From positions 12,908,962-12,972,961 of the forward strand of contig NC_134034.1 of assembly GCF_964204645.1 (NCBI RefSeq): a stretch of DNA of 64,000 nucleotides. The letters run 5' to 3'. Shown piece by piece: positions 35,701 to 38,700 of this stretch. The stretch is from Tubulanus polymorphus (Eukaryota > Animalia > Nemertea). Within the stretch, counting starts at the first letter, position 1. Every line of letters starts with the position of its first letter. The position numbers were made by a program, and so were the translations under genes. The notes beneath the pieces are model-generated. The model was not told where the DNA came from. It searched no databases and saw only the letters and a program-made list of their open reading frames with translations.

Positions 35701-38700
35701 CTACTGGTGGGTGCTGTTTGGTTGGAAAGTAGCACCGTCCGCGACACAAACGGGGTCCTGTTTTACTATATCATTGCCGTATCGGGGCGTTACGTGTTTC
35801 AAACAGTTTCAGTGAGTGCGTTGTTGAGAACCTCACTAGCCGCAGCCCGCTTTCCGATAGCGAAATATATATAATTATGTATATTCAAAAGAATGAAAAT
35901 TAAATCACAATACGGAACTCAAATCAGGGGCAATACCTGTTAATTAGGGGTAGGGAGATCATCCTTAATCTCCCTCACTAGGTGGAGCCCGCGGGGGTCA
36001 GGATTCTTTATTTTGACTACTGGTCTTCAATAATTGAAAATGTTTAAATTCAAATTATGGTTTCTATGGATACAGGTAATATCGCTGGTTGTTGGATTGT
36101 TGTTTATGAGTGAAGGCGGTTCCAGTTTGAATGAAGTGGCCATTTTGAATATAAACGGTGCTTTGTTTTATATGGCTATATTTTCAACATTCCGCAATTT
36201 GATGGGAGTCATTTCAGTGAGTCGTCTGCGCGCGCACAACGCGATCACATGGCACCGAGATCACAAAAGTGATCGCATCCACCTTGTATAGGCTGTTCTA
36301 ATTTCGGTGGCGGAATATTATCAAAATTAATTAGACAATATCCGGGAGCCCGAGTGAAGTTTCCGAGTACACAGTATTAGTGCAAGTTTCAACTCCCCTC
36401 ATTGCCCGATCCACGCTCTGTTTCACCATACTCGTGAAACAGGTGATCGTGAGCTTGGTCGTAAGCGCCTGCGGCTACTACGACCGCAGCAGAAGTACAG
36501 ATGGCGCTAGCAGTCTCGATGTCAGTCCAGCAGCCGAAGAGATTGACCGGAACGATGATGTTTTTTTTTGTGATGGGATGGTATAATAGTAATACTAGAT
36601 TTTCGGAACACGCGTTTATGAAATTGTTTTGGCCGCTTGGCTTTTCGAGCTTTGAAGCTTCAAATGACAAAATAAGAGCCTCGGCATTTCACAGTTTTTA
36701 ATTCAGCGCGTTCTCTCTCCCTCTTTTATCCACGGAACAGTTAAGCGCTGTTGTGATCGGTATAAGCGCCTTCGGTGCCCAGATTTACTACGACCGCAGC
36801 GGAAGTATAGATGGCGCTAGTAGTAGTCTAGATGTCAGTCCAGCCGTTACTAAGACGTTGACCGGAATGATGATGTATTTCGTCATCAATATGACCTGGG
36901 AGAACATGATTTGGATCCTAGATGTATGAACAACACATTTACCTCGGCTCGTTCGCGAGCAATTTCCCCGCTTGGCTTTTGAGCTTTTTTGAGCTTCCAA
37001 CACGGCATTCTTAATATTCACATTTTGAATTTACGTCTGTTGCGCATGCGCGATTCGGCTTGAACGGTGTTAAAATTTGAATAATGATTATATCCACCGA
37101 ACTCGATAGATGGCGCCACACGTTTGACGGTTTACATTCATTCCGCTTCTTTCTGAAGCTCATGTTTTATTTACAGTTTTGATTTTTCAAAAAAAGAAAA
37201 ATGAAAATGTCCTACTTTTTCGTTACCAGATTGTGGCTATCTTAGCGGCAACGCTATATTACGGTCAGGACTCGTCGCAGGAAGACAGTATCATGAACAT
37301 AAATGGTTGTATGTTCTTTTTCCAAACGAACATGAGTTTCGCAAATCTGTACATGGTTCTACAAGTGAGTGGAGTGAATGTCATCCGTCAACTAGTATTA
37401 CCCCAGTCCCCACGCACATCCGTCGATTAGTGAACACGATTGTCAATAATACTGTGTACTCGGGCGGCTCCGGTCTTTGACTGTACTGGGCTGGCTCCGT
37501 ACTTTGATTGCACTGGAGTAGCTCCAGTGTTTGTAATTGAACTGGGCGGTCCGGTGTTTGAGATTGTACTCGGGCGGCTCCGATGTTTGATTTCGGGTAA
37601 ATTCAACGTTGATTTCTTAATCGCTATTTTGAATAATTTGAGGCTATGCTAAACACCTCCCACAACTCACCTAGAAAACTACCATATCCCGCGTAATATA
37701 ACCGATTAAACCGGGGTCAATTTCACACCAACCTGGATTCTAGTTGTTGTGATAATATTATCGAGAATGCTAACACATTTTCAATTATAGCAATTATTTT
37801 CAACAGTGAAATTGTACCCCCACACCCCTACGACAGTGAGCACGGACAGTGGATTGCGTTCTGTGAATTGGTAATTGCTCGAACGCAACATGATCAAAAC
37901 AAGATTCTCGATAATCATCAGAAATCAACGTAATATGTCGACCACGATTCCACTCGATAAACCGAGATATATCTTAATAAAGTGTGTCCAATTAATTGAT
38001 GGATTTATTTCGGAATAAAATTCACAGTTAAAGACACTCGAGATGTTAAACCAATGTCTCAGTAATTATCGAATGCATGGTCATCAGATTTCGAATTTTA
38101 AAACTAATATCGACCTCCTGGGGTTGCAGGAGTTATCTCAAAGTTCGATGACTCAATTAACAGTCGACACGTATAAAGGACATGATAATAGCTGTTATCT
38201 GATGGAGTTAACTCTTTTGAGAAACTGTGAAGAGGGTCCAGAATCAAGGACGAGCTATAGCTTGAAGAGCGAGCGGGTGGGGGGGAGGCGTTTGATTTGA
38301 GAAACTTTGTCCATATTGCAAATCGTCTTGCGTCTTATCTGGCATTGATTGAAGATAAAATCGGTTTTTAAATGATCTATTTTTCTAAAATGAAGTCCGA
38401 AGAAACGATTATTTACTGATTTAGATATAATCTATGATTTTAAAACGTTGATTTTAGACCAATATTGATTTTGCTCATGCGCCAAAACCGCCTACCATAA
38501 TATCATAAACAACTATATAATCAACAGTTATATTCGAATATATATTTACAACATTATTTAGAAATTAAGATCACACAAAAAGTTTATAATCATCTGTTGT
38601 GAAAAATAGATAAAAAAGAAAAACTGTTTCTAAAAATGCAAAATTGAAATGAAGATGAAAAAGAAGAATTTCAAATTATCGATTATTGAATAAATTATTA

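Follow-up and report, generated by a model that had tools for sequence, protein, structure and literature searches.

A tandem array of variant exons in a white-like ABCG gene of the nemertean Tubulanus polymorphus and its probable control by several long-range pre-mRNA helices

A white-like ABCG gene with an array of variant exons

The window analysed here is a stretch of 64,000 nucleotides from the 268-Mb genome of the palaeonemertean Tubulanus polymorphus. Its + strand carries, from about 26785 to 40730, a white-like ABCG gene, and a protein search showed that the RefSeq 'protein white-like' isoforms of this species contain the exons of the window exactly. The product is similar to White-like ABCG half transporters in its NBD-then-TMD layout, in its matches to PF19055 and PF01061, and in an identity of about 50% to animal White. 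Upstream, a gene read by eye (22608–24814) consists of a cysteine-rich extracellular exon, a membrane helix and then a short tail; its predicted product resembles BAMBI or an activin-receptor-like protein.

Between exon 10 and exon 12 lie six intact variant exons (a, b, c, d, f and g) and a dead copy, e (Table 1). The six are homologous tandem exons with intact splice sites, all in phase 0-0 and of lengths divisible by three, and the spacers around the variant exons measure at least 198 nt. All six match a profile of the White segment formed by the end of TM1, the first outer loop and TM2; the profile itself included the variants, and the TM segments were placed by alignment to ABCG1. Variant g is the closest to the standard White sequence and has the top profile score. 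The N and the F of the TNMSF motif are both kept only in g, one or both being replaced in a, b, c, d and f; these residues presumably occupy the positions of ABCG2 N436 and F439.

The acceptors of a–e are pyrimidine-poor, and those of f and g are the best, with good tracts. Variant e is broken, its donor having been lost (TT where GT is expected). Through a weak GTATAA donor, e could still yield an open frame of 46 codons (36443–36580) without TM2, a frame for which no RNA support was found. The b–c and d–e introns align weakly (35241–35329 with 36286–36372, p 0.005), and the copy in the d–e intron follows a TAG and opens with a short frame that resembles the beginning of e and f, perhaps being a further decayed variant; the a–b and b–c introns gave no significant DNA alignment with each other. 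CTCF-like cores number 19 across the whole window, with 0.5 expected, and five fall in the cluster (34364, 34641, 36499, 36809 and 37108), two of them inside exons e and f.

Table 1. Exons and predicted pairing elements of the cluster, by position in the window (exon numbers are those of an earlier reader; energies in kcal/mol, net values after opening cost).
Feature	Position	Strand	Remarks
Constitutive exon 10	33929–34034	+	phase-0 donor; joints 10>d, 10>f, 10>g; in all four RefSeq isoforms
S0, partner of D1	34184–34200	+	150 nt after exon 10; 17 contiguous bp, 4 G:U
Variant exon a, 45 aa	34423–34557	+	intact; no RNA joint or RefSeq isoform found
SA, selector after a	34618–34637	+	pairs D1; 19 bp and one mismatch, −23.4; net −15.7
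Variant exon b, 45 aa	34756–34890	+	joint b>12; RefSeq XP_074659153.1
SB, selector after b	35181–35205	+	pairs D1; 25 contiguous bp, 3 G:U, −33.5
Variant exon c, 40 aa	35692–35811	+	joint c>12
Variant exon d, 47 aa	36076–36216	+	joints 10>d, d>12; RefSeq XP_074659151.1
SD, selector after d	36362–36382	+	pairs D3; 20 bp, −28.9
Variant e, dead duplicate of f	36443–36600	+	158 nt, out of frame, 79% identical to f
SE, selector after e	36633–36651	+	pairs D2 (38259–38276); 18 bp, 3 G:U, one bulged G, −26.5; net −3.7
Variant exon f, 61 aa	36741–36923	+	joint 10>f; RefSeq XP_074659150.1; strong acceptor, weak GTATGA donor
SF, selector after f	36967–36985	+	pairs D2 (38259–38277); 17 bp, 4 G:U, 2x2 internal loop, −23.2; net −7.0; p 0.023
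D1, dock inside the cluster	37016–37043	+	between f and g; three competing partners, S0, SA and SB; single-copy in genome
Hairpin over exon g	37124–37391	+	local fold z −4.2, region picked after the stem had been seen
Variant exon g, 45 aa	37230–37364	+	joint 10>g; RefSeq XP_074659152.1
D3, partner of SD	37444–37464	+	at start of a five-copy 27-nt array (37455–37592)
D2, dock of the earlier note	38259–38277	+	pairs SE and SF only; 487 nt before exon 12
Constitutive exon 12	38763–38855	+	joints b>12, c>12, d>12, 12>13

The RNA evidence comes from one public run that behaves as RNA and is stored as assembled contigs, which show presence only; contig depths were left out of any ranking of the variants. 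The GT..AG joints seen in this run are listed in Table 1. Joints between variants, joints skipping the cluster and joints for a or e were not seen among the assembled contigs of the run, absences that prove nothing because assembled contigs drop rarer paths, and e is crossed by an unbroken contig. An RNA run from 2015 matches exon 14 only. The RefSeq isoforms X1, X2, X3 and X4 hold exactly one variant each, f, d, g and b respectively. One variant exon per transcript is therefore observed in the RNA joints and in four RefSeq isoforms (use of a lacks a joint or isoform), which supports the mutually exclusive choice that an earlier note on this DNA had assumed. Over 33880–39400 of the sequencing run designated X2, b and c were joined only to exon 12, f and g only from exon 10, and d on both sides; this one-sidedness is probably contig simplification, and its pattern agrees with the stronger splice site of each exon.

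Frame and steric clash both fail to explain the exclusivity, given the common phase, the divisible lengths and the size of the spacers. With frame-shift decay and steric clash ruled out, an active mechanism would be needed. The options for mechanisms enforcing exclusive splicing have been set out (PMC6071210); for the cluster studied here, RNA pairing is the likeliest control of exon choice.

Complementary elements in the introns

Complementarity within the cluster exceeds chance, as judged from ViennaRNA energy predictions at 37 °C. The two best long-range helices of an unbiased scan were SB:D1 (35181–35205 with 37016–37040, 25 bp), the strongest long-range helix of the cluster, and SD:D3 (20 bp). 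Two helices at −28 or better were observed against 0.1 in shuffles; single stems of this strength are present in 24% of genomic control stretches. After removal of low-complexity arms, the cluster has more complex long-range stems than 36–37 of the 37 genomic controls, a count that is conservative because the filter also removed the 25-bp stem. The arms are single-copy and do not behave as a dispersed repeat or as MITE ends; dispersed repeats in the cluster are confined to 34278–34352 and 35494–35636, which contain no main arm, and a search of Rfam gave no match. The genome repeat searches skip very common words, and three pattern scans were run directly.

D1 is the sole hub with three partners, and each of S0, SA and SB beats the best of 200 background chunks. 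Three partners were reached in none of 150 shuffles and in one of 37 genomic controls (a tandem repeat), at thresholds of 17 bp and −15 kcal/mol that were fixed after S0 had been seen. In 368 kb of control DNA, a run of 17 bp with D1 was found once. At D1, several selectors overlap on one dock beyond chance; SE and SF on D2 were also counted as overlapping selectors, and these two are duplicates. Since S0, SA and SB overlap on D1, just one of the three can make a helix at a time. The three partners vary at 8 of 17 aligned positions, always by transitions, seven of which keep the pair (G:U or Watson-Crick). These changes are one-sided, not compensatory, and the G:U-friendly differences are partly built in, since the search allows G:U. 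S0 pairs only D1 above the rest, and as a general upstream dock it was rejected, D1 being its single partner. The D1 helices are absent from the global minimum-energy fold. A copy of D1 in the e intron (36688–36711) has decayed, its energy with SB being −19.5 and positive after the opening cost; in line with the route described in PMC6071210, the e/f duplication would have copied exon, selector and D1 together, with subsequent decay of the D1 on the e side.

The stem that joins SD to D3 is unique, the only exact genome matches of its 17-mer being its two arms, and it is extended by two shorter helices at 36329–36356. The hairpin over exon g consists of an outer helix (37127–37151 with 37363–37388) that covers the g donor and an inner helix (about 37155–37167 with 37328–37340). 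Both the d stem and the g hairpin are in the global minimum-energy fold, which for so long a fold is weak evidence. D3 was also considered as a universal dock and rejected, GGAGCC-like matches after b and c reaching only p 0.13–0.15. No selector above background was found for c, although c is used. Three borderline stems stand outside the model described below: 35643–35659 with 37541–37557, 35204–35222 with 38734–38752, and 35970–35989 with the g donor.

The earlier note had placed a docking site at D2, with an extension to 38290, and had proposed that selectors after the variants compete for it. All of the sequences that it quoted are present at the positions given, and its pairings with the e and f introns were reproduced (Table 1). 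About seven duplexes as strong as the e pairing exist in the region, so that the e pairing alone is unexceptional. The stronger evidence concerns the e/f selector island, where the e and f introns align best locally. With this island as query, the best joint partner in the g–12 intron is D2 (−52.0), a value reached by none of 200 shuffles and none of 256 genomic control stretches (best −48.8); the test is only partly independent because the query ends were taken from the earlier reader. Nor is D2 a dispersed repeat, with 7 matches at 2 mismatches against 8 for a reversed control.

The proposed matches after the other variants did not hold up. The length-corrected p values of the 18-nt D2 core after d, c, a and b are 0.22–0.36, and those of the extended site are 0.056 (d, borderline), 0.26 (c) and 0.44 (a). 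Only the e/f island beats background, and one dock after the last variant with a selector for each variant is not supported, D2 pairing above background for e and f only and D3 for d only. The extension is a G-run that pairs equally well with other pyrimidine-rich stretches (34216–34234, −27.1; 37817–37832, −25.0; 35620–35641, −31.2). It also differs in a second allele (sequencing run X3), where an insertion of GGG follows 38278 and positions 38289, 38290 and 38292 are changed. Six allele differences fall within 38212–38292, one of them in the unpaired gap at 38258 and none in the D2 core; the unchanged core is not evidence, because its chance is estimated at about 0.4. Once the opening cost is included, the helices of D2 rank as the weakest in the set; they are also absent from the global minimum-energy fold, and the best partner, SE, follows the dead exon. 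The caution in the earlier note that the e and f selectors are duplicates was well placed, e and f being one duplicated unit of which e is dead. The chances are about even that D2 is an f-specific part of a multi-dock control. A 5-bp hairpin with a UUCG loop (36947–36960), absent from the e copy, lies just before the f selector, and its region also pairs D2 (−24.5).

Models for exon choice

The exon array is real, and a multi-dock RNA control of it is probable. With a probability of roughly 0.6, several long-range pre-mRNA helices, and not one dock, steer the choice of exon. Each helix would start from the intron after a variant and loop out what follows, bringing the donor of that variant nearer to exon 12. 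Pairing of SA or SB with D1 would remove everything through f; with g kept closed by its local hairpin, no usable donor would then lie between that of a or b and exon 12, and a or b would be selected. Pairing of SD with D3 would remove e, f and g and select d, and pairing of SF with D2 would remove g, aid the weak GTATGA donor of f and select f; SE would be a copy left beside dead e. Working from the other side, S0 paired with D1 would remove a–f and bring exon 10 near the strong g acceptor, so that g is selected. The upstream variants would be skipped by default, because the acceptors of a–e are pyrimidine-poor. Tentatively, these elements may together form a tiered RNA switchboard, built independently in a nemertean, in which an inner dock arbitrates between upstream (g) and downstream (a, b) looping, d and f have docks of their own, the last exon is closed by a hairpin, and the selection is among six versions of an ABCG substrate-pocket helix.

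It is unlikely that the helices have no role in splicing and are leftovers of short inverted duplications or products of chance, with exclusivity arising from splice-site strength, tissue-specific proteins or polymerase pausing, and with the e/f island being a protein site or the result of recent homology. One strong stem per 4.7 kb is indeed common in genomic DNA, D3 falls in a minisatellite, two exons as similar as e and f would be expected to share some intron sequence, and the cluster contains five CTCF-like cores. However, single-copy D1 has three distinct partners, one per intron, the arms follow donors in the orientation that looping needs, and the hairpin covers exactly the g donor, all of which argue for a function in exon choice.

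The pairings might instead be mainly dampers: D1, D2, D3 and the hairpin would hold down f and g, proteins would choose among a–d, and the selector next to the dead e would have been retained to keep f and g silent. The best acceptors are indeed those of f and g, all significant helices apart from S0:D1 have f, g or both inside them, and SE has kept its full pairing despite the loss of e; a parallel is offered by the balancer structures of Dscam1 (PMC8791459). This account is improbable, given that SA, SB and SD each follow one specific variant and that the additional removal of c and d by SA:D1 and SB:D1 amounts to selection, not damping. The least credible alternative is a single downstream dock at 38259–38290 that pairs in turn with a selector after each variant: its pairing to the e/f island is real, its position downstream of the last variant is canonical (PMC6071210) and its d match is borderline, but its a, b and c matches are at background, its G-run is neither selective in its pyrimidine partners nor constant between alleles, and a, b and d have stronger partners elsewhere.

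Related splicing systems and homologous exons

Steering by several helices shares its elements with known systems. Downstream dock-selector pairing has been described for the insect 14-3-3zeta, Mhc, MRP1 and Dscam clusters (PMC6071210, PMC4691838). These clusters likewise have tandem duplicated exons, with selectors in the intron after the variant and the complement further downstream, and the distal variants are looped out. Unlike in the insect genes, no single dock serves all variants in Tubulanus, and the richest dock lies inside the cluster, before the last exon; the host is a nemertean, the gene an ABCG gene, and the arrangement is known from sequence and predicted pairing in one species. 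Bidirectional pairing occurs in srp and in Dscam exons 4 and 9 (PMC4691838, PMC8042237). Similarly, S0:D1 would loop out upstream variants and SD:D3 and SF:D2 downstream ones; the differences are that S0 has one partner, which would suit a duality like that of srp but not a general upstream dock, and that D1 would be contested directly by the upstream and the downstream mode.

Several stems, some of them competing, also govern one cluster in the multi-stem ensemble of hymenopteran MRP (cited in PMC6071210) and in human ATE1 with its stems R1–R5 (PMC7797038). MRP is likewise an ABC transporter, and the present gene belongs to a different ABC subfamily and lineage. In contrast to both systems, the Tubulanus cluster has six live variants and a hairpin over the donor of the last exon. 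Within the part of the literature covered, the tested dock-selector systems found were from arthropods and mammals, and no paper was found that deals with this exon array or describes dock-selector pairing for a lophotrochozoan.

Since the dock-selector principle is already known, the gain lies in breadth and in a new layout; what is new is probably the multi-dock layout in a nemertean ABCG gene and not the pairing principle itself. The cluster measures 4.7 kb, with stems of 17–25 bp, and is small enough for one minigene. It could serve to examine whether competing structures arise through the duplication of exons (PMC6071210) and by what means the variants that flank the chosen exon on either side are kept out. 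By this route, one gene may make several ABCG transport specificities.

Protein and profile searches for close relatives returned the species' own RefSeq isoforms and then a nearest homologue about 52% identical; one of the homologue searches used as query an alignment of a database protein and one window exon, the window exons otherwise served singly as queries, and full-length comparisons used database proteins. In the stretches covered around six other ABCG-like loci of the genome the array was not found: three have a single copy of the segment, and three gave no match and may therefore not have been fully covered. In Haliotis, Patella, Saccostrea, Ptychodera and Branchiostoma there is one copy of the exon for this TM1–TM2 segment, in Lingula there are two and in Tubulanus seven; its borders are the same in the outgroups where they were checked. 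Both gene copies of Lingula anatina carry the doubled exon. The two Lingula exons share 73% identity, and their identity to any Tubulanus variant does not exceed 42%, a comparison by pairwise identities and not by tree. These values make it plausible that the Lingula duplication is separate and that the Tubulanus array had an independent origin.

The tandem exons of Lingula anatina white lie at L012:9926–10376 and L029:7150–7583, and only the second copy was seen in RefSeq proteins. A perfect 16-bp inverted pair connects the second copy (L012 10325–10340) to the next intron (10726–10741), and a 23-nt pair flanks the first exon copy.
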